Below, one piece after another: positions 17,141-43,005 of a stretch of DNA of 64,000 nucleotides (its first letter is position 1; each line of letters begins with the position of its first letter). Under the pieces are notes generated by a model. It did no database searches, was not told the DNA's origin, and worked only from the letters and a program-made list of their open reading frames with translations. The DNA lies in the IMG/VR virus record IMGVR_UViG_3300017963_000188, positions 62,001 through 126,000 of that record. One strand, written 5' to 3'. Both the position numbers and the translations under genes were made by a program.

Positions 17141-17270
17141 CTTCCTCAGACATAGCTACAGTTTTGCCTGTTTTCAAATTTACATAATGAGAACCTATTA
17201 CGGACCATCCATCATCATCTATTTTATATTCTCCTTCAAGCATCTTGTTCTTTCCGATGTTGAAACACAA
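17052..17270 (-). CDS. small hypothetical protein
   Basis: 72-aa ORF between cca and methyltransferase; start uncertain. Confidence 0.4.
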   Translation of the reverse strand: MCFNIGKNKMLEGEYKIDDDGWSVIGSHYVNLKTGKTVAMSEEDEETDGDSQARQDLLPDDTCNSRREGGEL

Positions 17271-18594
17271 TCTGCATCAGAGCTTCCATGTTGTTGTCTT
17301 CTGGCACATCCAGGACATGCTCCATCAAAGCATTCAACACTACACCCACTTGAGGACCAGGCTTGACACCCAGAGCCTGCATCACATCATGCCCATCCAC
17401 AGCCAAGTTACGTGGACTATTGGGGGTGAAGTCTTTTTGCTCATCACATCGTTTCTTGAAGGTCACGAAATCTTCGTGGTCCTTCTCAGACATCCCAGCA
17501 GAACGACTCCCAGCTTTGTCTGCAAAGCTCAAGATGAAAAAGTCTTTCAGACGTTCTTTCCCAATCTTGTTGATAAACCTTCTCACACCAGGATCTTTCA
17601 TCCTCCTGTTGCTTTGATCTGCCATATGGTGAAACACCAAATGCTTTACGAATTCTCGTTCTTCATTGGAGAACTTCATTCGACGCATGAAGTCTTCAGT
17701 GATACGAGCTGATTCTTTTTGATGATCTATGAATGCAAATTCACCTCGACGTTCGTCAAATTCCCTGACCACAGGCTTTCCAATATCATGTAGGAAAGCA
17801 GCCAGACGGATCAAGGGCCTATCAGCAGGGACATTCTTGATCACTGCTACGGTATGTCCCCACACATCAAAGTCATGGTAATGGTTCTGCTTGCAATCAA
17901 ACATAGCCTCTGCTTCTGGGCAGAAGTGTTCAAACAGACCACAGATTCTCAACTGTCTTAGGCCAGTTTCCACATGTTCTGAAGACAGAATCTTCATGAA
18001 CTCATCCCTGATTCGTTCTGGTGATACCTTAGTCAAGACCTTTGAACAGTCCTTCATTGCTTGCAAAGTAAATGGTTCGATCTGAAATCCTAACCGAGAT
18101 GCAAATCTGATTGCTCTCATCACTCTCAGACCGTCTTCCAAAAACCGATCCTTAGCTTTCCCTACTGCTTGGATCAACCCTGCCTTCAGGTCTTTCTCTC
18201 CACCAAAAGGATCTACCAAGACATCATCAATAGGATCAAAAGCCATTGCATTGATAGTGAAGTCACGACGGCTCAGGTCCTCATTAATGTCACTGATAAA
18301 ATCCACAGAATCAGGACGACGACCATCACTGTAGTTTCCATCACCCCTTAGGGTAGTGGCTTCAAAACCCTCACCATCAATCATGACTGTAACGGTACCA
18401 TACTCGATTCCCGTGGGTACAACTTTGGGGAACATGGCTACTACTTGATCTGGAAGAGCAGAAGTACAGATGTCCCAGTCTTTTGGATCTAGACCTAGAA
18501 TTGCATCTCGAACAGACCCACCTACGATGTGGGCAGAGAAGCCTTTTTCCTTCAGGCTCTTGATGATTTCTACAACTGGCTCTGGAACTCTCAT
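17236..18594 (-). CDS. cca: CCA tRNA nucleotidyltransferase with HD domain
   Basis: VGGSVRD, DWD, DLSRRDFTINAMA, EDGLRVMRAIRF, FLHDIGK. Confidence 0.93.
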   Translation of the reverse strand: MRVPEPVVEIIKSLKEKGFSAHIVGGSVRDAILGLDPKDWDICTSALPDQVVAMFPKVVPTGIEYGTVTVMIDGEGFEATTLRGDGNYSDGRRPDSVDFISDINEDLSRRDFTINAMAFDPIDDVLVDPFGGEKDLKAGLIQAVGKAKDRFLEDGLRVMRAIRFASRLGFQIEPFTLQAMKDCSKVLTKVSPERIRDEFMKILSSEHVETGLRQLRICGLFEHFCPEAEAMFDCKQNHYHDFDVWGHTVAVIKNVPADRPLIRLAAFLHDIGKPVVREFDERRGEFAFIDHQKESARITEDFMRRMKFSNEEREFVKHLVFHHMADQSNRRMKDPGVRRFINKIGKERLKDFFILSFADKAGSRSAGMSEKDHEDFVTFKKRCDEQKDFTPNSPRNLAVDGHDVMQALGVKPGPQVGVVLNALMEHVLDVPEDNNMEALMQIVFQHRKEQDA

Positions 18595-21722: not shown

Positions 21723-21971
21723 CTACTCCTCATATTCAATTATTGGGAATTGTTTACCTGATATGGTTTCTTCTCTCCCACATTCTTCACATCTATGGGG
21801 GTATTTTATTGGGTAGGTAGGGTAATACGTGTCCATTGGTACCATCTCTCCACCACAGTCACAAAACAGTTTAGTCTCGAAAACTTTAACTTCTCTTTTG
21901 ACTTTTTTCATGGCTCCATCCGAATGACAAGATTTGAGGTAATACTCATCAATATTTCTATCATACCTCAT
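21723..21971 (-). CDS. zinc-ribbon hypothetical protein
   Basis: CDCGGEM...YPHRCEECG. Confidence 0.65.
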   Translation of the reverse strand: MRYDRNIDEYYLKSCHSDGAMKKVKREVKVFETKLFCDCGGEMVPMDTYYPTYPIKYPHRCEECGREETISGKQFPIIEYEE

Positions 21972-23049
21972 CCCACTTAATGGCCTGAATCACTACGTCA
22001 GGATAAAGTTCTCGACTCATGATTTCAATGCACATCTCATTGATTCGTTTTCTATTTGGCTCACGAGGCAATGAGGTTGTCTTCTTCAACTCCAAGAATA
22101 GACGTTCTTTTTCAAGAGCCCATTCTTCTAGCTGTTCAAATGACCAGGCCCCTTGACCAATAGTCATGAGTTCTTTTGCGTCAGGACGACGTACAATGAC
22201 CCCTTTACCAGTAAGGATTTCTTCACCCATCCTGATGAGCCTTACTAGATTTGTAGCGTGTTTACAATCATATCCAAACTTAGCTTCTAGTTCAGCTCGT
22301 TTTGGGTTCCTATTTTTCTTCCAGTTCTGGTAGCTATTCCACTCATTAATAGCATTCTGATATTGACGTTCCCTGGACATGGCCTCAATGAAGTTGTCAG
22401 AACAACCTGTTAGCTTCTGAATCTCAGCCCAGTTTTGTTCGTCCCCAGGATCAAAACTCTGCAAAAGACCAACTGTATTTACTTCTCGAAGTTCCTCCAG
22501 AGTCTCATCACTGAGTCTAGCTTCCTCAATAGATCCTTTCAGAATGTGGTTCAGCACATAGAAGAAAGCTCCCATATGGTCACGGCTCACAAGCTTGTGA
22601 GTCTCAGGAAGACCATAGGTTCCACGTTCTGGCTTTGTCTTTGGTGGGTTCAAAAGCCAGTTTCGGTGCCTTCTGATACGTTTAAGCTGTGAGAAGGCAT
22701 AGCCCAAATAGCTGCTACCCATCTTTGAGGAAAGGAACAAATCCCTGTGGTCTCTGATCAGCTTTCCTGTGTCTGTCATGGTCACGACATCAGAGTCTTC
22801 ACAGTACAGAATCTCAAAGCTAGAGGGGTTAGCTGCAAGAGCCATGTTACAGAATTTCTTCAGATCCCACAACACTCGGTCAGGTTCCTTGATTTCTTTC
22901 TGCTCAAATCTCTGGAGACATCCAAGATAATATTGAATTGGAGCCAGAGCAATACCCCTGAAATCCTCATCAGAGTCTGGTCTGCTGGTCCCATAAGCAT
23001 GGGACCCAAACCATGTTTCGTATATAATTTTCAAGTCTTTTAGATCCAT
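21961..23049 (-). CDS. Pol-beta superfamily nucleotidyltransferase (RlaP/YcgL-like)
   Basis: GSHAYGTSRPDSDEDFRG, YDCKHATNLVRL. Confidence 0.88.
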   Translation of the reverse strand: MDLKDLKIIYETWFGSHAYGTSRPDSDEDFRGIALAPIQYYLGCLQRFEQKEIKEPDRVLWDLKKFCNMALAANPSSFEILYCEDSDVVTMTDTGKLIRDHRDLFLSSKMGSSYLGYAFSQLKRIRRHRNWLLNPPKTKPERGTYGLPETHKLVSRDHMGAFFYVLNHILKGSIEEARLSDETLEELREVNTVGLLQSFDPGDEQNWAEIQKLTGCSDNFIEAMSRERQYQNAINEWNSYQNWKKNRNPKRAELEAKFGYDCKHATNLVRLIRMGEEILTGKGVIVRRPDAKELMTIGQGAWSFEQLEEWALEKERLFLELKKTTSLPREPNRKRINEMCIEIMSRELYPDVVIQAIKWDEV

Positions 23050-27801: not shown

Positions 27802-28011
27802 TTATGCTTGACAAGCAATGGCTGCATTTGCAGTCATCACCGCTTCTCGAATCTTGCGGATCGCTACATCCTGATCCTCACCTGGAGGGGTGAGCCGATG
27901 AACAGTTAGGGCAAATGTCTTGGCTGCTTCTCTCAGTTCGTTGTATTTTGGGATTTGGTCTTTGCTCGGTGGGTGATAGGTGAATAGATGTTCTACAGTC
28001 TTCTCGTCCAT
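27802..28011 (-). CDS. Acb2/Tad1-like hairpin (nucleotide-signal sponge) protein
   Basis: FTYHPP...Y..LRE.A...AIRKIREAVMTANAAIA; AGGAG SD before ATG 28011. Confidence 0.75.
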   Translation of the reverse strand: MDEKTVEHLFTYHPPSKDQIPKYNELREAAKTFALTVHRLTPPGEDQDVAIRKIREAVMTANAAIACQA

Positions 28012-28881: not shown

Positions 28882-29083
28882 TGTCTAAGCCTATAGCTTC
28901 TAGAACTTTCTGATCTGCATCAACAGGCTTAGCTATTAATTCTCCAGGCTCCAACCCATCAGCTTTGGAGATCATCTCAATCCTTTCATAGGCCACTTTT
29001 TCTTCTAGATAAGCAGCCATTCCTTTTCCAGTTCCTATGCTATATCTAGAACCATTACGATACACAATCACATATACTTTCAT
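28874..29083 (-). CDS. small hypothetical protein
   Basis: 69 aa, ATGA-coupled. Confidence 0.55.
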   Translation of the reverse strand: MKVYVIVYRNGSRYSIGTGKGMAAYLEEKVAYERIEMISKADGLEPGELIAKPVDADQKVLEAIGLDII

Positions 29084-29793
29084 TTCTTGACAGCTTTCTT
29101 AGCAGCAGGCTTTGCCCGTGCCCTTTTTTTACGTTTCGTTTTTGGTTCTTGCTTTCTATTTTCATCTAGGGATGACATTGGACCTGGTTGTCTCATTTCT
29201 TCTATGAATGCATTAGCTTCTACATATTCTTTCTTTTTGAGATCATACACTGTACCAATCTCCTGCATGATGAAAGGATGATGGACAGAGGCTATGATCT
29301 GGATATTTTTCTCAAAAGGATACAGCAAGAAAAGTCTTGATAAAGCCATTGCAACTCGTATAGAAGCTGCCTGATCAGGTTCGTCGAGAAGATACACATC
29401 ATACTCTTTTGACATGATTGCATCGATAGCATAGATAGCTGATTCACCATGAGACATCCACATAGAGTGCATATGGTGGCCAACATCCATGTCTTTGTCA
29501 TCCCAATCAAAATAGTTCAGTGTTCTTTTGTTATCTTTTTCAAAATCATAATGCTTGATTTTACAACCTTCATCCATATCAATATTGATGATATCTTTGG
29601 CTTTTTTATGATCATGGCTTTTCCAGACATTGGTAGAAGTGTAATCTCCAATTAACTGTAGGAGTGTCGATTTACCAGATCCATTGAGACCAACTATGAG
29701 ATTTGTGCGACCTCGAAACTCGATAACATCACCAGATTTAAAGCATCTGTGGTCTTGTTTGAAAGTAACTTTTCTGAATTTTGGTTCAAACAT
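29080..29793 (-). CDS. ABC/AAA_21-type ATPase
   Basis: GLNGSGKST, SHGES, YLLDEPD, H-loop SVHH; start uncertain (track 29865). Confidence 0.85.
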   Translation of the reverse strand: MFEPKFRKVTFKQDHRCFKSGDVIEFRGRTNLIVGLNGSGKSTLLQLIGDYTSTNVWKSHDHKKAKDIINIDMDEGCKIKHYDFEKDNKRTLNYFDWDDKDMDVGHHMHSMWMSHGESAIYAIDAIMSKEYDVYLLDEPDQAASIRVAMALSRLFLLYPFEKNIQIIASVHHPFIMQEIGTVYDLKKKEYVEANAFIEEMRQPGPMSSLDENRKQEPKTKRKKRARAKPAAKKAVKK

Positions 29794-29795
29794 TT

Positions 29796-30224
29796 TCAGT
29801 GTCCAATATAACTCAGTCGGGGTATCTGAGAGTATTTCTTCCTCCAATCTTTGGTGTATTTCCATTGGAGGTCATCAAGTTGTGGGAAGAACCCTTCATC
29901 ATCCATACTGTCTGGAGAGAAAGCATCTTCAGCATCATGAACCCATGCCATGACTATCTTCTTGTTCTTATCACTAGGATCTACCAACTCTATGAATCTA
30001 TTTTCTTGTGGTGGGCATGTGGGAAGAATTCCTAGCATGAATCTGATGACACCCCCCATACCAAGAGCAAGGTGAGGTTTGTCATCACAGGAACCAGCAC
30101 TTGTATCATATGTGATGCCATTCTCATACATAGCATCTACACATTCTCGTATCGAGAGCTTTCCTTTAGCATAGAGCCGACGCATAAAGAATTCACATAT
30201 TGGTCTGAGATGTGCCACTCCCAT
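29796..30224 (-). CDS. hypothetical protein
   Basis: 142 aa, AAGGAG SD. Confidence 0.65.
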   Translation of the reverse strand: MGVAHLRPICEFFMRRLYAKGKLSIRECVDAMYENGITYDTSAGSCDDKPHLALGMGGVIRFMLGILPTCPPQENRFIELVDPSDKNKKIVMAWVHDAEDAFSPDSMDDEGFFPQLDDLQWKYTKDWRKKYSQIPRLSYIGH

Positions 30225-30240
30225 AATAGCTCCTTTATGT

Positions 30241-30326
30241 TGGTGGGTGAGGAGGGACTCGAACCCTCAAGCCCGAAGGCACAGGAACCTAAATCCTGCG
30301 TGTCTACCAAGTTCCACCACTCACCC
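30241..30326 (-). tRNA. trnL: tRNA-Leu(UAG)
   Basis: cloverleaf, loop TTTAGGT, long variable arm, CCA. Confidence 0.95.
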
Positions 30327-30373
30327 AGCTTGCATCTCACCCAGCTTGCATCTCATCCAGCTTGCATCTCACC
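30320..30373. repeat. 16-bp tandem repeat (3.4 copies) overlapping tRNA-Leu 5' end
   Basis: CTCACCCAGCTTGCAT at 30320, 30336, 30352 (1 mismatch), partial 30368. Confidence 0.9.
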
Positions 30374-30605: not shown

Positions 30606-31433
30606 TTAGTCGATCCAGCTAACACCTTCCATTCGACCTTGATTGGATTCAGTGTTAGCAATGACTTTACGCCATTGTCTGATCTTAAGGGTTTTATGGT
30701 CCACATGCCTGATATTGCCCCTGACAAACACTTCTGGACGCTGACGCATGGGAAAGCCGTGACTCAAGGGGGTCCCTCCAAGCACTACCAGTTCCTCAGC
30801 AATGTGAGGGTTTCCACCAGCACGACCCGCATGGGCTCCAATGCTTTCCTTACGTTTCATCAGACCCATTTCCACAGCCTTTTCGATTTCTTTCTTCTCA
30901 GTATCTGTGGTGTTGAGGAAGAACCACTCCCCTTGCCTGAAGGTCCTCCCTTTTTGCTTCCCTTCTGCTGTCCATACAGTGGGGGCTTTGAGGCAGTTGT
31001 GTGCATCCCTGACCGTACTCACAGCTTTGGGGAGCTGAGCAATGAAGAGCTGTCGTTCATCCACTCCCATCAAGAAATGACGTTTGTTTTCTGGGGTGTA
31101 TTCCCGAACAACCCAATGCTTTTTGGTTTCCCGGATCGTATTCTTGGGTCTATCAGGGATACGAGACTTGTAGATCAGAGTCTCAAAGGGCCTACGTTTT
31201 TCATGGACCATCAACACAAGTTGACCCTTCTCTGCATCAGTACCCTGGACCAAGACCCGATTGGAATCATGGCCAGGATAAATCCTGAAGATTTCGGTAC
31301 GACGATTGCCCTTGATACGACGGTCAATATCCATACCGAAAACATCCTCTCCACCCGTACCACGAGTGAAAGGAGTGTTGGTAACTTCCACTTTGAGTCC
31401 TGCTCTCTCGAAACCTTTGACCAAATTTTCCAT
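30606..31433 (-). CDS. hypothetical protein (RQGEWFF motif)
   Basis: 275 aa; visibly higher GC than flanks. Confidence 0.8.
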   Translation of the reverse strand: MENLVKGFERAGLKVEVTNTPFTRGTGGEDVFGMDIDRRIKGNRRTEIFRIYPGHDSNRVLVQGTDAEKGQLVLMVHEKRRPFETLIYKSRIPDRPKNTIRETKKHWVVREYTPENKRHFLMGVDERQLFIAQLPKAVSTVRDAHNCLKAPTVWTAEGKQKGRTFRQGEWFFLNTTDTEKKEIEKAVEMGLMKRKESIGAHAGRAGGNPHIAEELVVLGGTPLSHGFPMRQRPEVFVRGNIRHVDHKTLKIRQWRKVIANTESNQGRMEGVSWID

Positions 31434-31494: not shown

Positions 31495-33450
31495 TTATTG
31501 ATCTAGAACAGACCTGATCTTTTTTGAGATTTCACTGAGACTGAAAGGCTTTTGAATAAATCCATCACAACCTTTTTCCAACACATATGAAGCTTTCCCA
31601 TTGATGTTGTATCCACTCATCAAGACAACTTTCACTTTTGGGTTTATCTTCTTCAGAGTGTCATATATCTCTGGACCCCCAATTCCTGGCAGCACCATAT
31701 CTAACAATATCAAGTCGATACTGTCTTGATGGTTCTTATAGAAATCAATAGCTTTTAAACCATCTTTTTCAGGATAAACCGTATATCCTATAGTACTGAG
31801 AAGTCTAGTAGCTGTTTTTATGATAATATCTTCATCATCTATCAACAATATACATTCTGATCCTATCTCTAACTGATCATCCTCTATTTTATTTTCAAAT
31901 AAGATCTCTTCAGCTCTGGGGAGATACACATTTACGGTAGTCCCTTCTCCTTCAACACTATGTAGAGAAATATCCCCCTCATGATTTTTGATGATACCAT
32001 ATGCTGAAGATAAGCCAAGACCAGAACCACGTCCTACTTCTTTGGTTGTGTAGAACGGATCAAAGGCTCGTTCTATTGTTTTATTACTCATCCCACACCC
32101 AGTATCTGTCACAGATAACTTGATATAATCACCAGGTTTTAAATGAAGAGATCCTATTTCAGATACTGATATATTTGAAGTAGTAATATAAAGATCACCT
32201 CCTGTTGGCATAGCTTGACTAGCATTGACAAACAGGTTCATAAGAACTTGTTCTATCTGGCCGGGATCTGCACTGACACTCCAAATATCACTCTTCAGAC
32301 TTTTATGCACAACAATATCTTTCCTAGTTCTGCTAAATATACCAATGCTATTGTTGACTAATACATTTATGTTTGAGGTTATGATATTTGAGGTGTCTAT
32401 GCCACGACGGGCAAAGCTAAGAAGTTGTGCAGTCAGATCAGCAGCTCTCTTACCACAAATCTCTATATCTATAAGTTCTTGGCTAGTCTTCCCTTCTTTC
32501 AAACGAAGTAAAGTAGCATTTGATAGTATACCCATCAAAAGGTTGTTGAAATCATGTGCTATTCCACCAGCCAAGGTTCCAATAGCTTCCATTTTCTGAG
32601 CATGGTAAAATTGAGTTTCAAGAGCTTTTCGATCTGTGATGTCCTCTCCATAACCAATACTATATTTTATATTACCCTCGTGATCATACAACACTGAATT
32701 GTGCCAAGCTATGAGTCTTTCTTCTCCAGTCTTTGTCAGTACAGGATTTTCATAGTATTCAGATAATTGTATTTCACCATTTATCAGATTATTAAAGACT
32801 TGTTTTACTTGAGGCACATATCTTTTTGGTAAGAAGTTTTCAAACCAGTTTTTACCAATTATATGCCTACAATCATCAGAATTATAACCTAATATCTGAC
32901 ATCCTTTCTTGTTTATAAGAGCAACATTTTGATTAGAATCAATTGTTACAAAAATCACATTAGCTACATTAAGGAACTCTTTCACTGTATTTTTTTCCAT
33001 CTTTAATTCTTTTTCTACTTCATATTGTTTAGTCACATCTACGATCTGTATTATTAGACCACCTTTAAAAAATGATGTGTGAAAAGAAGCTACTTTCTCA
33101 GCACCATCTTTACACGTTATTCTGAATACAGTGCAATCCTGTCCCTCACCCTTAAGAGCTTGTGTCACATTTTTCCAAACAAAATCTCTATATTCTCCAT
33201 CAGGATATAACCTTTCTACCCATTCTCCTACATTTTTGATTTCATCAGTAGTGTACCCAATGAATTTCTCTAGAGCTTTATTGAAAAGTACAATAGAACC
33301 ATCCGACCGTCCTATAGCCGTTGGTATTGGACTTTGAAGCACAATTAACGGAAAGCATAATTCAGAGTCTAGGATATCAACATCATATTCTGGAGATCCC
33401 CTAATATCTGCTAGAGCTTTCGCTTCTTTGTCCGACATTCCTTTGATCAT
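31495..33450 (-). CDS. PAS-PAS hybrid sensor histidine kinase/response regulator
   Basis: two PAS; AHDFNN H box, N/G1/F/G2 boxes; receiver LLIDDE...LLDMVLP...KPF. Confidence 0.95.
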   Translation of the reverse strand: MIKGMSDKEAKALADIRGSPEYDVDILDSELCFPLIVLQSPIPTAIGRSDGSIVLFNKALEKFIGYTTDEIKNVGEWVERLYPDGEYRDFVWKNVTQALKGEGQDCTVFRITCKDGAEKVASFHTSFFKGGLIIQIVDVTKQYEVEKELKMEKNTVKEFLNVANVIFVTIDSNQNVALINKKGCQILGYNSDDCRHIIGKNWFENFLPKRYVPQVKQVFNNLINGEIQLSEYYENPVLTKTGEERLIAWHNSVLYDHEGNIKYSIGYGEDITDRKALETQFYHAQKMEAIGTLAGGIAHDFNNLLMGILSNATLLRLKEGKTSQELIDIEICGKRAADLTAQLLSFARRGIDTSNIITSNINVLVNNSIGIFSRTRKDIVVHKSLKSDIWSVSADPGQIEQVLMNLFVNASQAMPTGGDLYITTSNISVSEIGSLHLKPGDYIKLSVTDTGCGMSNKTIERAFDPFYTTKEVGRGSGLGLSSAYGIIKNHEGDISLHSVEGEGTTVNVYLPRAEEILFENKIEDDQLEIGSECILLIDDEDIIIKTATRLLSTIGYTVYPEKDGLKAIDFYKNHQDSIDLILLDMVLPGIGGPEIYDTLKKINPKVKVVLMSGYNINGKASYVLEKGCDGFIQKPFSLSEISKKIRSVLDQ

Positions 33451-33514
33451 AAGAGCCCCTGATCTTTTTCGTACTATACAACTTATTTTTAGATTATATA
33501 ATAAAATAATTGAT

Positions 33515-33602
33515 TGGTGCCGGGGGAGGGAATCGAACCCTCACGAGATTTCTCTCATCGGATTTTGAATCCGACGTGTCTACCTAGTTCCACCACCCCG
33601 GC
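33515..33602 (-). tRNA. trnL: tRNA-Leu(CAA)
   Basis: stem TCGGA/TCCGA, loop TTCAAAA, CCA. Confidence 0.95.
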
Positions 33603-33606
33603 TATA

Positions 33607-33692
33607 TGGTGCTGGAGGAGGGATTTGAACCCTCAATCCCTTACGGGCATAGCGTCCTGAACGCTACGTGTATACCGTTCCACCACTCCAGC
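33607..33692 (-). tRNA. trnL: tRNA-Leu(CAG)
   Basis: loop TTCAGGA, CCA. Confidence 0.95.
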
Positions 33693-33700
33693 AAATTGTT

Positions 33701-33788
33701 TGGTGCCGGAAGAGGGAATCGAACCCCCACGGGACAAGTCCCACTAGGACCTAAACCTAGCGTGTCTGCCTAGTTCCACCATTCCGGC
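33701..33788 (-). tRNA. trnL: tRNA-Leu(UAG)
   Basis: loop TTTAGGT, CCA. Confidence 0.95.
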
Positions 33789-33789
33789 C

Positions 33790-33875
33790 TGGTGTCTGGG
33801 GAGGGGATCGAACCCTCAAGCCTTTCGGCACAGCGACCTCAACGCTGCGTGTCTACCTAATTTCACCACCCAGAC
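33790..33875 (-). tRNA. trnL: tRNA-Leu(GAG)
   Basis: loop TTGAGGT, CCA. Confidence 0.95.
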
Positions 33876-33877
33876 TT

Positions 33878-33962
33878 TGGTGCTCAGGGAGGGATTCGAA
33901 CCCTCAAGCCTTTCGGCACAGGATTCTTAGTCCTGCGTGTATACCAGTTCCACCACCCGAGC
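33878..33962 (-). tRNA. trnL: tRNA-Leu(AAG)
   Basis: stem CAGGA/TCCTG, loop CTAAGAA, CCA. Confidence 0.93.
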
Positions 33963-33969
33963 ATATTTT

Positions 33970-34056
33970 TGGTGCTGGGGGAGGGAATCGAACCCTCACG
34001 ACACAAGGCCAGGGGATTTTAAGTCCCCAGTGTCTACCTAATTCCACCACCCCAGC
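33970..34056 (-). tRNA. trnL: tRNA-Leu(UAA)
   Basis: loop CTTAAAA, CCA. Confidence 0.95.
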
Positions 34057-37815: not shown

Positions 37816-38538
37816 CTAAAATAGTTCCAGTTGCACTGGTATTCTAGGTTCCTTTCCTTTGATATATAATCTCTTATATCGACCAGAAGGAACCATCACA
37901 ATGTTGTCGATCACAATACCCTCTTGGATATATTTTGACAAACATAGACGTGCCGTACTGGTCGTTCTATAATGATGCTTGATATTATCTATAGCCTCTT
38001 TGAGATGGCAGCCTGGATGTAGGCTTACAAATCTAACAAGGTCTGAAACAGTTAATTGGAAGGGAGTAAAATACTTGTTCTGGTCATTACCTGCTTCTGC
38101 CCATGTCTTATGTTCTTCTCGTAAATTTTTCTTGAGCAACCAATGGACCTTTCTACGAAACTTTGGTTCCATAGATTCTATAACTTGATTATTTTTTCTA
38201 ACGTTTATTTCTATAAGTCCAATTCCAAAATGTTTACATAACGATGCTTCAAAGTCTCTTCGACCTGAGCTGTAAGACCTCCATTGGCCTTTTTTCTTTG
38301 GGACTGCTATTGAAACTCTATGGGCATATCTTGTCCAGAACATGGCTTGCTCAAGCACTTTGAGACTGAAACTGGTCTTCACCTCAATGACCCATAATAC
38401 AGGGTTCATCTTGGCTACAATGTCAGCTCTTGAACTGGTTCTGCTAGGATCAATCTCTACTTCTTGGTAAACTTCCCAATGGTGGTCCTGAAGCCAGTCC
38501 ACAACTGACTTTGCAATGTCAGATTCTTTTATTTTCAT
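37816..38538 (-). CDS. PD-(D/E)xK nuclease-like (MmcB-like) protein
   Basis: VYQEV...RADIVA...VIEVKTS. Confidence 0.7.
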   Translation of the reverse strand: MKIKESDIAKSVVDWLQDHHWEVYQEVEIDPSRTSSRADIVAKMNPVLWVIEVKTSFSLKVLEQAMFWTRYAHRVSIAVPKKKGQWRSYSSGRRDFEASLCKHFGIGLIEINVRKNNQVIESMEPKFRRKVHWLLKKNLREEHKTWAEAGNDQNKYFTPFQLTVSDLVRFVSLHPGCHLKEAIDNIKHHYRTTSTARLCLSKYIQEGIVIDNIVMVPSGRYKRLYIKGKEPRIPVQLELF

Positions 38539-39551
38539 TACTTGAGTTTGTTAGGAACGATCTGGGAATGCATCCAATGAGTAGAGGTTTGCACATGACC
38601 TTTTCTTACATATTTGGCAGTTGATTTTCTGAAATCCCGGTATCGAAATTCATCAACCACTCTGATTACATATCCTTCACATTCATCGTTGTCATAAGTT
38701 TCCTGGTACAAATTCTTAATGGTCTCTTCATCCCATATCCCTCTATAAAGAACCGGTACTGTTTCAAGACCTAAGAGTTGACACCATTCTACTGTGTCAT
38801 CCCAGGATAGGCAACGATTATTTTCATCCCAGATCGAGAATGTCATGAAATAACTGGGAAGATTCTCGTAGCTTATGGAATGAGCTGCATATAAATTCTC
38901 TCCACAAATTCTCCAATCTCTGGGGATCTCATAAGCCACTGAAGCATGGAGTGACTTCACCCAATGCCTCGATTCATGGTCCTTCGAGGTGATAGAACGA
39001 GCATGGATGTGACCTTGGTACATGGTAGTATTCTCACCATCCATCTTAATGGTCACTACAACTTCTTTACCTTCAAATTGGGAAGTATCCTGAAGGATCT
39101 TATCATCATCAGAAGCTCCAGGACTCCATGGTAAATGATAGGTCCTTGGATATTTATAGAACCCTATGAACGTGATCAGAGGATTTGCAGATCGAATCAT
39201 TTTCTCAGATTCAGAATATAATTCACCATGAAACCTGACCTTATGAGTCTTATCAGTACAGGGATTACCCCACTTGTCATACTCACCTTTTTTAAGATGA
39301 GGGGGTAGTAAGATAGTCTCGATACCAGCAGCTTCCCTAACCTCATTGGTGCTGACCGAAGTATCCTCAGCTTTGATGTGACAATCAGAACAAAGGGCAG
39401 CACCATTATCTAGATAGTATCCACCATCATCCCAAAGTTTACGTTCCATGATGTGGTGAGCATCTGAGGCAGGAGCCTGACAGATCACGCACTTGTGACC
39501 ATCTCGGTCCATTACGTTCTGTCTGAACTGGTCTCTAGTAAGCAGCATCAC
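38538..39551 (-). CDS. HNH domain fused to RNA ligase family domain
   Basis: RDGHKCVIC..DAHH..LCSDCH; KYPRTYHL, KMDGEN, GENL, EGYVIR, AKYVR. Confidence 0.85.
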   Translation of the reverse strand: MMLLTRDQFRQNVMDRDGHKCVICQAPASDAHHIMERKLWDDGGYYLDNGAALCSDCHIKAEDTSVSTNEVREAAGIETILLPPHLKKGEYDKWGNPCTDKTHKVRFHGELYSESEKMIRSANPLITFIGFYKYPRTYHLPWSPGASDDDKILQDTSQFEGKEVVVTIKMDGENTTMYQGHIHARSITSKDHESRHWVKSLHASVAYEIPRDWRICGENLYAAHSISYENLPSYFMTFSIWDENNRCLSWDDTVEWCQLLGLETVPVLYRGIWDEETIKNLYQETYDNDECEGYVIRVVDEFRYRDFRKSTAKYVRKGHVQTSTHWMHSQIVPNKLK

Positions 39552-39811: not shown

Positions 39812-40143
39812 CGTCTACGAGTCCTACGAACCCTATTTTGCCTAGCCTTACGAGCCTTACGTTTTTTAGCACCCATGATAGCTCTTTGAGCTTCTTGGAC
39901 AGCTTTAGATAGATCTTCAACCTTTCTCAGTTCCTGATCGCTAAGGTCTTGAATCTTGACATCACCCCAACCTTTGAATAGCTCTTCTAGATCTTCACCA
40001 AGATCCTTGAACATTTCAACGTCTTGAGCTTTCTTATTTCTAGCAGTCCTAACTACTTCTGTTGGGATCACCCATTCATTGTCGTGGGACTTGTGAATTT
40101 TACGAGCCCTACGGGGGCTTCGATTATCATTGTAACGGTACAT
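39808..40143 (-). CDS. basic protein with MYRY N-terminus and Arg/Lys tail
   Basis: 111 aa, AAGGAG SD; RNKKAQ; ends RRTRRR. Confidence 0.75.
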   Translation of the reverse strand: MYRYNDNRSPRRARKIHKSHDNEWVIPTEVVRTARNKKAQDVEMFKDLGEDLEELFKGWGDVKIQDLSDQELRKVEDLSKAVQEAQRAIMGAKKRKARKARQNRVRRTRRR

Positions 40144-40247
40144 TTGTATCTCCTTATTCAGGTTTGGTCCTCTCTAGACAAAAGTTAAAAAAAGATAACA
40201 AATCTAGATCTTCTATGAAAAAGTCACTTTTCTAGATTTTTTAATTC

Positions 40248-40276
40248 AAAAATCTGGATCATTTCAGTATAGAACT
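40248..40276 (+). promoter_or_regulatory. class A promoter cassette
   Basis: AAAAATCTG-N8-CAGTATA-N7-AGGAGGTG. Confidence 0.7.
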
Positions 40277-40291
40277 ATAGGAGGTGACGAG

Positions 40292-40816
40292 ATGTCATAC
40301 CAAGATTCCAAAGCATGTGAGATGGTCGCAACCCACTGCTGCTGCTGCTCCCGTCCATTGGTCGATGCCAAGTCGGTTGAGATCGGTATTGGCCCTATCT
40401 GTCGTAGCAAGTACGGCTTCGATATCGATGTGGATGAAGAGAGTCGTGAGAAAGCTAACAAGCTGGTCTACAAGGTTGCCTGTGATCCTTCTCATCCCGA
40501 AGCTGTTGACCATTGCAAGGAACTCCATGACCTGGGATTCCATGTTCTGGCCAGCAAGGTCATGTCTGCTGTGGCTGCCATCCAGATTACCATGACCGAT
40601 GCAGAGCATCCTCACGGTCCTGGTCGTCTCTCGGTCAAGACCCCCTACAGCCCCGATGTGGTCGAAGCGATGCGTTGCATCCGTGGTCGTAGGTGGGACA
40701 AGGAAGGGAAGGTCAACACTTTCCCGATCAGCTCCAAGGCTGACCTGTGGAAGATGATGCAGACTTTTTACAAGGGTCGTGTTGTTGTGGGTCCGAAAGG
40801 CCCCTTCACTATCTGA
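40292..40816 (+). CDS. DUF6011-like zinc-binding protein with HARP-like C-terminus
   Basis: CCCSRPLVD.KS...GIGPIC; PYSPDVVEAMRCIRGRRWD. Confidence 0.65.
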   Translation: MSYQDSKACEMVATHCCCCSRPLVDAKSVEIGIGPICRSKYGFDIDVDEESREKANKLVYKVACDPSHPEAVDHCKELHDLGFHVLASKVMSAVAAIQITMTDAEHPHGPGRLSVKTPYSPDVVEAMRCIRGRRWDKEGKVNTFPISSKADLWKMMQTFYKGRVVVGPKGPFTI

Positions 40817-40858
40817 GTAGTATAACTGTAGGAGTGGTAACAACCATAGGAGAACGTT

Positions 40859-41665
40859 ATGGCTACCAATCACGAGGCAATCGTCAAGCGGACCAACCTG
40901 TACTACATTGATCCCCAACAGATCAAGGTGATTGAGGGGTGGAACAAGCGAAAGGACTTTGGAGATCTGGAGGCTCTCTGTCAGTCCATCATCAATCACC
41001 CTGGGGTCAAGGTCCCTCTCCGAGTCAAGAAGGATTCCGAGGGGAACATCACCCTGATCGATGGTGAGCGTAGGCTCAAAGCCACCATGATGGCTATTGA
41101 GCGTGGTCACGATATCAAGGCTGTTCCTGCCATCATTGAGGATCGGAAGATGTCTCAGGTCGAGATGATGTACCTCCAGATCCTGGCCAATGACGGTAAG
41201 AATTTCGATCCGGTGGAAGAGGCTCATGCCTTCAATCAGCTCCTTCAGTGGGGCTCCACCATCGACGAGATTGCCACGAAGCTGGGCAAATCTTCGGTCC
41301 ATGTCAGGGAACGTCTGGTCCTGATCAATGCTGTCCCTGAGGTTCAGAAGGCTGTTGCTGATCAGACCATTCCCATCGGTGAGGGTAAGCGAATCGTGAA
41401 GGAATCCGATGGTGATGTGGAGAAGCAGCGTCAGGCTCTCAAGGCTGAGGTGAGCAAGCGAGCTACCAAGAAGGCCAACAAGGAAGCTGGGGTGAAGACG
41501 GAAAAGACCCCAGACTTGGAGCGTGTCCTGAAGGTCTTGAAGATTGAGATGAAGAAGGGCACTCCCAAGGAAGATCAGATGGTCTTTGCCTCTGAGATTC
41601 GTGGTATCGTTTCCATGGTCATGGAAAACATCGAGACTATGGGAAATCTCAAGCCCACCAAGTAG
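40859..41665 (+). CDS. ParB/Spo0J-like protein
   Basis: PLRV...LIDGERRLKA; FDPVEEAHAF..L; EIATKLGKS HTH. Confidence 0.88.
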   Translation: MATNHEAIVKRTNLYYIDPQQIKVIEGWNKRKDFGDLEALCQSIINHPGVKVPLRVKKDSEGNITLIDGERRLKATMMAIERGHDIKAVPAIIEDRKMSQVEMMYLQILANDGKNFDPVEEAHAFNQLLQWGSTIDEIATKLGKSSVHVRERLVLINAVPEVQKAVADQTIPIGEGKRIVKESDGDVEKQRQALKAEVSKRATKKANKEAGVKTEKTPDLERVLKVLKIEMKKGTPKEDQMVFASEIRGIVSMVMENIETMGNLKPTK

Positions 41666-41671
41666 TTCTTC

Positions 41672-41699
41672 AAAAATCTGAAAACCCTCAGTATATAAT
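41672..41699 (+). promoter_or_regulatory. class A promoter cassette
   Basis: AAAAATCTG-N8-CAGTATATAAT-AGGAGGTG. Confidence 0.7.
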
Positions 41700-41714
41700 C
41701 TTAGGAGGTGCTCC

Positions 41715-42017
41715 ATGAAAGTCACCACTGAGAAAGGTCATCCAGCTCTTATCGATGGAGCTGTCAGAATCACTTTCAAAGACCATACCGGCAAGACCAT
41801 GACCTGGCTTGCCAAAAAGATTGGTACATGCACCTGGAAGAGACTTGATCTAGAAGGTGGTTGGTGGCAAAAAAGCACCACCGAGAATGGCACTGAAATT
41901 GTAAAGGAAGAGGTGCTTGTAGCCAATCCTGACGAATTTCTCAAACACATCTTGATGCGAATGAATCTTCATTATGGTAAATATGAACCCATCACAGGCG
42001 AAGAAAAGGAGCGTTAA
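41715..42017 (+). CDS. hypothetical protein
   Basis: 100 aa, cassette upstream. Confidence 0.7.
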   Translation: MKVTTEKGHPALIDGAVRITFKDHTGKTMTWLAKKIGTCTWKRLDLEGGWWQKSTTENGTEIVKEEVLVANPDEFLKHILMRMNLHYGKYEPITGEEKER

Positions 42018-42021
42018 ATGT

Positions 42022-42099
42022 GGCAAAGAATCCGGCAAAGAATCCGGCAACCATTGCCGGATTCTGGGGATAAGTAAAATATTGAAATGTATCCGGCAA
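42022..42099. repeat. ATCCGGCAA direct and inverted repeat cluster
   Basis: copies at 42030, 42042, 42091 (+) and 42054..42062 (reverse complement). Confidence 0.85.
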
Positions 42100-42109
42100 G
42101 GAGATTAAG

Positions 42110-42349
42110 ATGAAATGTAAATTTTGTGGTGGCACTGCTGGGTCATTGATTGATGGGGCTCATGCTTTGTGTGCGGCTCGTAAGGAACGTAACCTTCCAA
42201 CACCATGTCTAGGATATCGATGTCAGACCTGTAATGGGCATGGTCGAATCCCCAAGACCAAATATGGACCAATAAATCCAAACCAAGCAGCTATTGATGC
42301 CTGGGCTCCACCATGTCCTGATTGTGATGGGAAGGGACATACTTTCTGA
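42110..42349 (+). CDS. Cys-rich small protein
   Basis: 79 aa; DnaJ-like CxxCxGxG repeats. Confidence 0.65.
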   Translation: MKCKFCGGTAGSLIDGAHALCAARKERNLPTPCLGYRCQTCNGHGRIPKTKYGPINPNQAAIDAWAPPCPDCDGKGHTF

Positions 42350-42388
42350 ACCTTTAAATATTTCCTGCATTTTTTCATTTTTTAATTT

Positions 42389-42416
42389 AAAAATCTGAAA
42401 AGTATCAGTATAGAAT
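42389..42416 (+). promoter_or_regulatory. class A promoter cassette
   Basis: AAAAATCTG-N8-CAGTATAGAAT-AGGAGGTG. Confidence 0.7.
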
Positions 42417-42432
42417 AGTAGGAGGTGACGAT

Positions 42433-43005
42433 ATGATGAAAGGCTGCCGACCACTCAATGAGCAAGAAGTAGAAAAAATCATCAGTTTCTTCAGCAAGAA
42501 CCGCTATGGGCTTCGTGACATTGCCTTGGTTCTGTTGGGACTTTACACTGGTCGTCGTATCAGCCAACTTCTGTCCGTCAAGGTTGAGGATGTCTACAAC
42601 TCCAAGACCGATAAGGTAAACGACCGTCTCTGGTTTGCTCGTCAACATGTCAAGGGTAAACGTGAAGGTGAGGTCGTGATACTTCATCCCAAAGTCAAGA
42701 CTGCCATCAAGACTTGGGTGGAGGCTATGCCTACTTCTGACTTCTTGTTCTGTTCCCAGAAAGGTGGGGCTATCTCTCGGATGCAAGCTCATCGAATCCT
42801 CAAAGAGGCTGTAGAAGTCTTAAACCTAGAAGGCAAGGTTGCCACTCATAGCATGAGGAAAACCTTTGCCAAGAAGATGTACGGTGCCCTGGACAATGAT
42901 ATCTATCGTCTCCAAAGGGCTATGGGTCACACTGATATCAAGACCACTGTGAAGTACCTGAGCTTCCAGCAGGAAGATATCGATGATGCTATCCTGGGGA
43001 TGTAA
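42433..43005 (+). CDS. tyrosine recombinase, catalytic domain only
   Basis: GRRISQLL (R), HSMRKTF (HxxR), MGH, TVKYL (Y); 190 aa. Confidence 0.92.
   Translation: MMKGCRPLNEQEVEKIISFFSKNRYGLRDIALVLLGLYTGRRISQLLSVKVEDVYNSKTDKVNDRLWFARQHVKGKREGEVVILHPKVKTAIKTWVEAMPTSDFLFCSQKGGAISRMQAHRILKEAVEVLNLEGKVATHSMRKTFAKKMYGALDNDIYRLQRAMGHTDIKTTVKYLSFQQEDIDDAILGM

Follow-up and report, generated by a model that had tools for sequence, protein, structure and literature searches.

Bacteriophages carry metabolic and translation genes, and to our knowledge their sensory genes have hardly been studied. Among bacterial hybrid histidine kinases, those of the CckA type run their relay backwards in the phosphatase state (CckA-ChpT-CtrA), and EspA and EspC of Myxococcus end at their own receiver and have no need for a histidine phosphotransfer (Hpt) protein. 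Kinases on phage contigs are already known, both from PHROG families and from IMG/VR records. The literature searched on huge and jumbo phages and histidine kinases yielded no study of how a histidine kinase encoded by a phage functions, and the closest match dealt with a divergent receiver domain outside two-component systems (PMC7824862). Here we describe a hybrid histidine kinase gene (P0001) at 31495..33450 on the minus strand of a 64,000-nucleotide stretch of DNA, called the window throughout, which comprises positions 62001-126000 of the 358,038-bp IMG/VR record IMGVR_UViG_3300017963_000188. The best explanation of the gene is that it is an intact phage auxiliary regulatory gene, apparently captured from a Thermodesulfobacteriota-like lineage, and we assign a probability of roughly 0.6 to its product being an active kinase that would interact with host signalling or act through its own receiver. 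As it stands, the phage kinase is a well-documented candidate and not a discovery.

The gene begins with ATG and runs for 651 codons with zero internal stops. Its translation matches Pfam PAS, PAS, HisKA, HATPase_c and Response_reg as well as phrog_5982 (3e-92), which agrees with a first-pass annotation of the window that had called it an intact PAS-PAS hybrid histidine kinase. The domains follow one another on the minus strand in the order PAS-PAS-DHp-CA-REC. PAS domain 1 occupies residues about 44-140 (33031..33321; Pfam PAS_3 at residues 55-118) and PAS domain 2 occupies residues 159-275 (32626..32976; Pfam PAS_9, PAS_4 and PAS), ending in a 'DITDRK' linker to the kinase. The dimerisation and phospho-acceptor domain (DHp, matched by Pfam HisKA; 32404..32598) contains His299, whose codon lies at 32554-32556. 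The catalytic ATP-binding domain (CA; HATPase_c at residues 395-513, 76.9 bits; 31912..32268) has N, G1, F, and G2 boxes, and the C-terminal receiver domain (REC; Response_reg at residues 534-646, 72.3 bits; 31513..31851) contains the phospho-acceptor Asp584 (codon 31699-31701). When the phage kinase was aligned with 19 bacterial homologues, H299 was found within the H-box 'GGIAHDFNNLL' and was invariant in all 20 sequences. The same holds for the ATP-box residues N409, D449/G451/G453 (D-x-G-x-G), F463, and G475/G477/G479 (G-x-G-x-G), and for the receiver residues D538/D539 (the acidic pair), D584, S612, and K634, so that the full set of phosphorelay motifs proposed earlier (H box, ATP boxes, receiver Asp and Lys) can be seen in the alignment. 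The phage kinase retains 82 of the 93 columns that are invariant among the 19 bacterial homologues, and its 11 substitutions are non-catalytic. No membrane segment was detected in the kinase, the highest 19-residue Kyte-Doolittle mean (1.24) falling within the receiver domain, and the protein is therefore predicted to be soluble (cytoplasmic). Judged by sequence, it is a class I (HisKA-type) hybrid histidine kinase.

The nature of the cue that the sensor module might read was approached through its predicted structure. An AlphaFold model of residues 25-290, with a predicted local distance difference test score (pLDDT) of 93.7, contains two PAS domains linked by a long helix, and its best matches are the tandem PAS domains of FixL and DosP (template modelling, TM, scores of about 0.75 and 0.68; identity 12-17%). 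The predicted F-alpha helices (residues 85-99 of PAS 1 and 209-223 of PAS 2) contain no His. Since this is the haem-ligand site, haem binding of the FixL/DosP type is unsupported, and oxygen sensing by a haem-PAS was rejected on the grounds that the proximal His is missing from both helices. FixL and DosP are thus the closest structural matches for the PAS-PAS module, but the phage kinase does not share their haem-ligand His. A flavin-binding PAS of the light-oxygen-voltage (LOV) type was likewise rejected, as the protein has no 'NCRFL'-like Cys motif and its Cys residues at 32, 106, 113, 184, and 194 lie in other contexts. PAS 2 does carry a subtype motif, 'GKNWF.NFLP ... ENPVLTK.GE.R.IAWHN', that is common to the phage kinase and the bacterial homologues P0002 and P0009.

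The record that carries the gene has a CheckV completeness of 100%, and within it the kinase gene lies at 93,495-95,450 of 358,038, with PHROG-matching genes and tRNA arrays on both sides. PHROGs identified the hallmark packaging and structural genes (terminase large subunit, portal, head maturation protease, and tail fibres), which settles the earlier description of the kinase as phage-borne. The Pfam models Terminase_6N and Phage_sheath_1 had no match in the phage genome, although PHROGs did find terminase, portal, and protease. Genes for replication and nucleotide metabolism are also present (DNA polymerase, helicases, ribonucleotide reductase, and the NAD-dependent ligase LigA), together with GroEL, a Ro60/TROVE protein, and a CCA-adding enzyme. 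The genome encodes 49 tRNAs for all 20 amino acids and a transfer-messenger RNA, and those tRNAs that fall in the window are mostly clustered by amino acid. One could propose that host DNA was misassembled into a phage contig or that a bacterial contig was mislabelled as viral. The closest homologues of the kinase are all cellular, and many kinase-bearing IMG/VR records are high in GC (G+C content) and possibly include host flanks, both of which would fit this proposal. It is countered by a 350,275-bp contig from another assembly, in which 21,956 bp covering both kinase junctions agree with the window at 100% identity. In a third assembly, a 95-kb contig shares 13,012 bp of identical sequence, comprising the kinase gene and its downstream side, and the identical kinase protein occurs on seven contigs, of which three places were examined. 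The chimeric assembly that the first-pass annotation had raised as a danger is excluded by the identity across both junctions. Phage genes on either side, the phage-like composition, and the hallmark genes speak against an artefact as well, and we regard this explanation as effectively refuted.

Base composition provides a view of how long the gene may have been in the phage. The kinase gene has a GC of 35.6%, where the phage genome has 40.6%. Among 351 phage open reading frames (ORFs) it ranks at the 2.5th percentile, and its GC at third codon positions (GC3) of 26.8% is at the 10th percentile of the same set. The gene is therefore AT-rich yet inside the phage range, and the expectation that it would be AT-richer than its surroundings holds to a moderate degree. 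The 15 closest cellular genes have a GC of 42-62% and a GC3 of 41-81%. Because the kinase is so far below its cellular homologues, its composition points to a long residence in the phage and not to contamination or a very recent transfer.

These data bear directly on whether the gene is neutral cargo that was acquired with accessory DNA in a tRNA-rich region and has stayed undecayed with no role in infection. A singleton with no orthologue in the viral records searched, a long branch in the tree, a weak ribosome-binding site, and the lack of a partner would all be consistent with such cargo. Set against this are a 1,956-nt frame that is open at 36% GC, where stops arise easily, and the 82 of 93 family-invariant residues that are kept, all catalytic ones included. 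The composition has also moved fully away from the 42-62% GC of the cellular homologues, implying a long stay in the phage with no decay. We consider neutral cargo unlikely, and prefer an intact auxiliary regulatory gene with an active product.

The origin of this auxiliary gene was sought in a very large family, in which more than 1 million representatives at 50% identity match at E<=1e-3 and 194,499 match at 1e-30. The best full-length matches are cellular (36-51% identity), and many are named as Thermodesulfobacteriota, Desulfobacterales, or 'Deltaproteobacteria'. The top match, P0002, is 47% identical over 91% of the query and lies on a bacterial contig that also has LpxC, NtrYX, and TonB-ExbBD. 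At the P0002 locus (L006 9111-12100, GCA_043818915.1), a separate 297-aa dCache_1 ORF overlaps the kinase start codon and the kinase has a hydrophobic segment at its N-terminus, an arrangement that resembles a periplasmic sensor split in two. Neither feature is present in the phage version. A maximum-likelihood tree was built from the DHp-CA-REC core with 129 rows (80 named genome loci, 45 protein matches, 3 virus or phage-record loci, and the query). The phage kinase core fell inside a 60-row clade with a Shimodaira-Hasegawa-like approximate likelihood ratio test (SH-aLRT) support of 99, in which the named rows are mostly Thermodesulfobacteriota, and so the phylogeny upholds the view that this is signalling of a deltaproteobacterial type. 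The query is placed at the base of the clade, at a position that is not exactly fixed, and its end branch measures 0.88 against a median of 0.41. A second round added 36 kinase cores from IMG/VR records, for 39 virus or phage-record kinases in all, and the clade was unchanged (59 cellular rows and the query), with 0 of the 39 joining it. To account for the virus-labelled kinases, the tree requires at least 10 separate origins, and core identity to the phage kinase among the 36 IMG/VR loci is 42% at most. Since the virus and phage-record kinases all lie outside the clade of this kinase, the captures are independent, and the phage kinase is a separate, fairly old capture from a cellular lineage, probably a Thermodesulfobacteriota-like one. 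In a search for the same locus in related phages, the neighbouring genes gave one weak IMG/VR match and none, and the kinase gave only distant viral matches.

The host was considered with two further phage genes in mind. The best named cellular matches of LigA are 'Deltaproteobacteria' metagenome-assembled genomes at 45-48% identity, followed by Bacteriovoracaceae at about 40%. The full-length GroEL gene (whole-record 176183-177751, minus strand; phrog_5725, 3e-142) has its nearest relatives, at 55-66% identity, on short contigs that, at a guess, may belong to related phages, and named bacteria of many phyla follow at ~50-53%. From the affinities of the kinase and LigA, a Thermodesulfobacteriota-like host is a reasonable guess, although the evidence is circumstantial.

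Several observations weigh against an active kinase captured from this lineage, and GroEL provides the first, as its identities of about 50-53% to many phyla carry no host signal. The kinase is alone in its own 50%-identity cluster with no relatives between 55% and 100% identity, and its long branch could also reflect relaxed constraint. The HisKA match (residues 291-349) scores 24.7 bits, narrowly below the Pfam gathering score of 26.9. Finally, the AT-rich spacer of 64 nt between tRNA-Leu(caa) and the kinase start (33451..33514, minus strand) offers a weak ribosome-binding site (AGGGG, 6 nt ahead of the ATG, as read from the sequence), and a consensus scan of the spacer found no promoter-like site on the minus strand, which is the kinase strand. 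Given this lack of a promoter-like site, the kinase may be co-transcribed with the upstream tRNA-Leu array. A shared promoter motif was also sought in the upstream regions of phage genes, and no motif was enriched there other than ribosome-binding-site words.

What an active kinase would do in the infected cell depends on its partners. The first-pass annotation had reported no cognate regulator nearby, and this extends to the whole 358-kb phage genome, where the kinase receiver is the sole Response_reg and where no second HATPase_c and no Hpt were found. A ChpT-like HPTransfase was matched in the phage genome only weakly, below threshold, and inside the kinase gene itself. As far as the encoded proteins can be recognised, then, the phage does not specify a complete phosphorelay, with no Hpt or ChpT-like protein and no terminal response regulator. 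In the mechanism that we propose, the kinase would dimerise via its DHp helices, by analogy with the family, and an intracellular cue read by the tandem PAS module would set the balance between kinase and phosphatase activity. His299 would be phosphorylated from ATP and the phosphoryl group would then pass to Asp584 of the protein's own receiver. Because the phage has no Hpt, ChpT-like protein, or response regulator, output is expected via a host partner or via the receiver itself. Phosphate could be given to, or taken from, a host phosphotransfer protein or regulator, or the kinase's receiver could engage in a phosphorylation-dependent interaction, as in systems where the receiver is the end point. 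With either output, the phage would link host signalling, while infection lasts, to the condition of the infected cell, and rewiring of host signalling by the phage kinase is a plausible hypothesis.

The direction of phosphate flow leaves room for a protein that is mainly a phosphate sink or phosphatase decoy, draining a host Hpt or regulator via its receiver and thereby shutting down a stress, motility, development, or defence response. Its core is CckA-like, relays of the CckA type are reversible, and the phage has no downstream component to accept phosphate, all of which would suit a sink. A pure sink, however, would not need the ATP-binding boxes, every one of which is retained, and a kinase-biased protein cannot be told from a phosphatase-biased one by sequence. 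This seems improbable to us, to about the degree of neutral cargo. A self-contained viral sensor is a more speculative variation, in which the host would be an anaerobe resembling sulfate reducers, the PAS module would respond to a redox, energy, or metabolite signal inside it, and the phosphorylated receiver would gate lysis timing, dormancy, or maintenance with no Hpt or regulator involved; we think this quite unlikely. The kinase could also control the phage's own programme (late-gene timing, lysis-lysogeny, or maintenance) via an unrecognised phage protein such as P0382, a 275-aa ORF (30606..31433) on the same strand 61 nt downstream of the kinase. Genes resembling those for integrase and ParB are found about 8-10 kb from the kinase, and EspA and EspC set a precedent for kinases ending at their own receiver, although the phage kinase is only weakly similar to them in NCBIfam. 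P0382 itself has no Pfam, PHROG, or PADLOC match, which argues against such a role. The Atlas clusters closest to it consist of hypothetical proteins, many of them viral (Uroviricota), and the scores of about 0.8 make this a lead only. P0382 as a hidden signalling partner accordingly found no support. There is also no conserved pairing of the kinase with a partner gene, because no related phage with the kinase was found. We judge control of the phage's own programme to be very unlikely, and return to an active kinase whose output reaches host signalling or its own receiver as the preferred reading. A role as a defence-system component was rejected in the absence of a PADLOC match. If the kinase is active, a virus of anaerobic bacteria would sense conditions inside its host by means of PAS domains and feed phosphate into a host relay or draw it off.

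The surroundings of the kinase gene are marked by tRNA genes. Directly upstream, ARAGORN identified six tRNA-Leu genes arranged head to tail on the minus strand (33515..34056), which together provide all six Leu anticodons (caa, cag, tag, gag, aag, and taa) and end 64 nt short of the kinase start codon. A seventh, tRNA-Leu(tag), lies 1.2 kb downstream of the kinase on the same strand (30241..30326), and the kinase is therefore situated between Leu tRNA genes, as had been noted before. In alignments, the downstream tRNA-Leu(tag) shares 78% identity with Leu(gag) and differs from the array's own tRNA-Leu(tag) gene, which lies at 33701-33788. As it is no copy of the latter, there is no duplication around the kinase that resembles phage attachment (att) sites, and no direct repeats flanking the kinase were found. 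Insertion of a kinase cassette by recombination at tRNA-Leu was rejected for these reasons. At 30320-30373 a 16-nt unit (CTCACCCAGCTTGCAT...) occurs three times in tandem. Its first copy overlaps the solitary downstream tRNA-Leu(tag) at that gene's 5′ acceptor end, and the repeat resembles a reiterated tRNA 5′ end.

Within 10 kb, the kinase is flanked by genes for an Acb2/Tad1-hairpin protein, RNA ligase, thymidylate kinase, RlaP, an ABC-type ATPase, a methyltransferase, and integrase-like and ParB-like proteins, and many functions encoded in this accessory region concern RNA and translation. The small ORF with the Acb2/Tad1 hairpin domain (PF24729; about 27802-28011, minus strand) is ~3.5 kb downstream of the kinase, and this domain is that of the anti-CBASS and anti-Thoeris sponge proteins. 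The ABC/AAA_15/AAA_21-type ATPase (261 aa; 29080-29865, minus strand) shows weak PADLOC similarity to mad3 (1.6e-13) and also to AriA and PtuA, mostly in the P-loop region. An RNA and tRNA maintenance set is made up of the CCA-adding enzyme, RNA ligase, RlaP, and Ro60/TROVE (window 17236-18594, about 38538-39548, and about 21961-23049, all on the minus strand, and whole-record 327441-329123). At about 40000-43000 the window has a GC-richer patch (45-50% vs 40%) with a ParB helix-turn-helix gene (about 40859-41665, plus strand), a short integrase-like gene (about 42433-43005, plus strand), and a DUF6011 gene, and simple ORF calling picks an antisense ORF there. This patch may be an inserted element or may serve as a maintenance module.

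Other large viruses with histidine kinases offer one comparison for this locus. The example described here is unusually clean, with a complete phage genome, junctions confirmed in a second assembly, and an orphan hybrid kinase that has every catalytic residue and a phage-adapted composition. The kinases of other phage records (those in phrog_5982 and others, in IMG/VR records of 250-417 kb, and in GenBank phage records such as the 735-kb megaphage LR756501, 25% identical, and Microcystis phage MaAM05, with its sasA) are likewise two-component kinases, some of them hybrid, and none is closely related to this one. Five IMG/VR records of 250-417 kb with CheckV values of 88-100% (loci L117/L119, L129, L162, L144, and L137) contain 1-5 receiver-domain genes each, including hybrid kinases unrelated to the one in this phage. 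Two-component genes thus appear to recur in huge phage-like records. Some of these records have stand-alone receivers, whereas this phage has none, and its portal protein has no match in the five. Among eukaryotic viruses, the brown-alga giant virus EsV-1, a phaeovirus, is described in PMC12993054, citing Delaroque et al. 2000 and 2001, as encoding several hybrid histidine kinases, with one in the virion, that were proposed to sense cues for viral activation. The parallel is that of a large DNA virus with hybrid histidine kinases, and EsV-1 differs in infecting a eukaryote.

The closer comparison is with cellular kinases. The solved structure closest to the kinase core is the CckA DHp-CA structure 5idj (6.5e-37), the receiver resembles Spo0F and DivK, and the best NCBIfam models are NF046020 at 334 bits and NF046026 at 244 bits, each with a cut-off of 1000. 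CckA of Caulobacter and Brucella accordingly shares the PAS-PAS-DHp-CA-REC order with the phage kinase and provides both its best structure match and its best NCBIfam model. The phage kinase, however, does not have the transmembrane N-terminus of CckA, and the phage has no ChpT and no CtrA. With 334 bits against an equivalog cut-off of 1000 and no membrane anchor, the phage kinase was rejected as a CckA orthologue. The nearest full-length bacterial homologue, P0002, also differs in having an N-terminal hydrophobic segment, as the phage kinase is not membrane-anchored. The most extensive likeness is to the CckA-like PAS hybrid kinases of Thermodesulfobacteriota and other bacteria, which are annotated as 'PAS domain S-box protein' or 'CckA'. 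Common to these and the phage kinase are the 'GGIAHDFNNLL' H-box, the four ATP-binding boxes (N, G1, F, and G2), and a receiver at the C-terminus that ends in 'GFIQKPF', and the cores are 45-55% identical. The phage kinase is thus assigned to the broad CckA-like PAS hybrid-kinase family, standing at the short end of it with two PAS domains, no N-terminal receiver, and a much more AT-rich gene than its bacterial counterparts.

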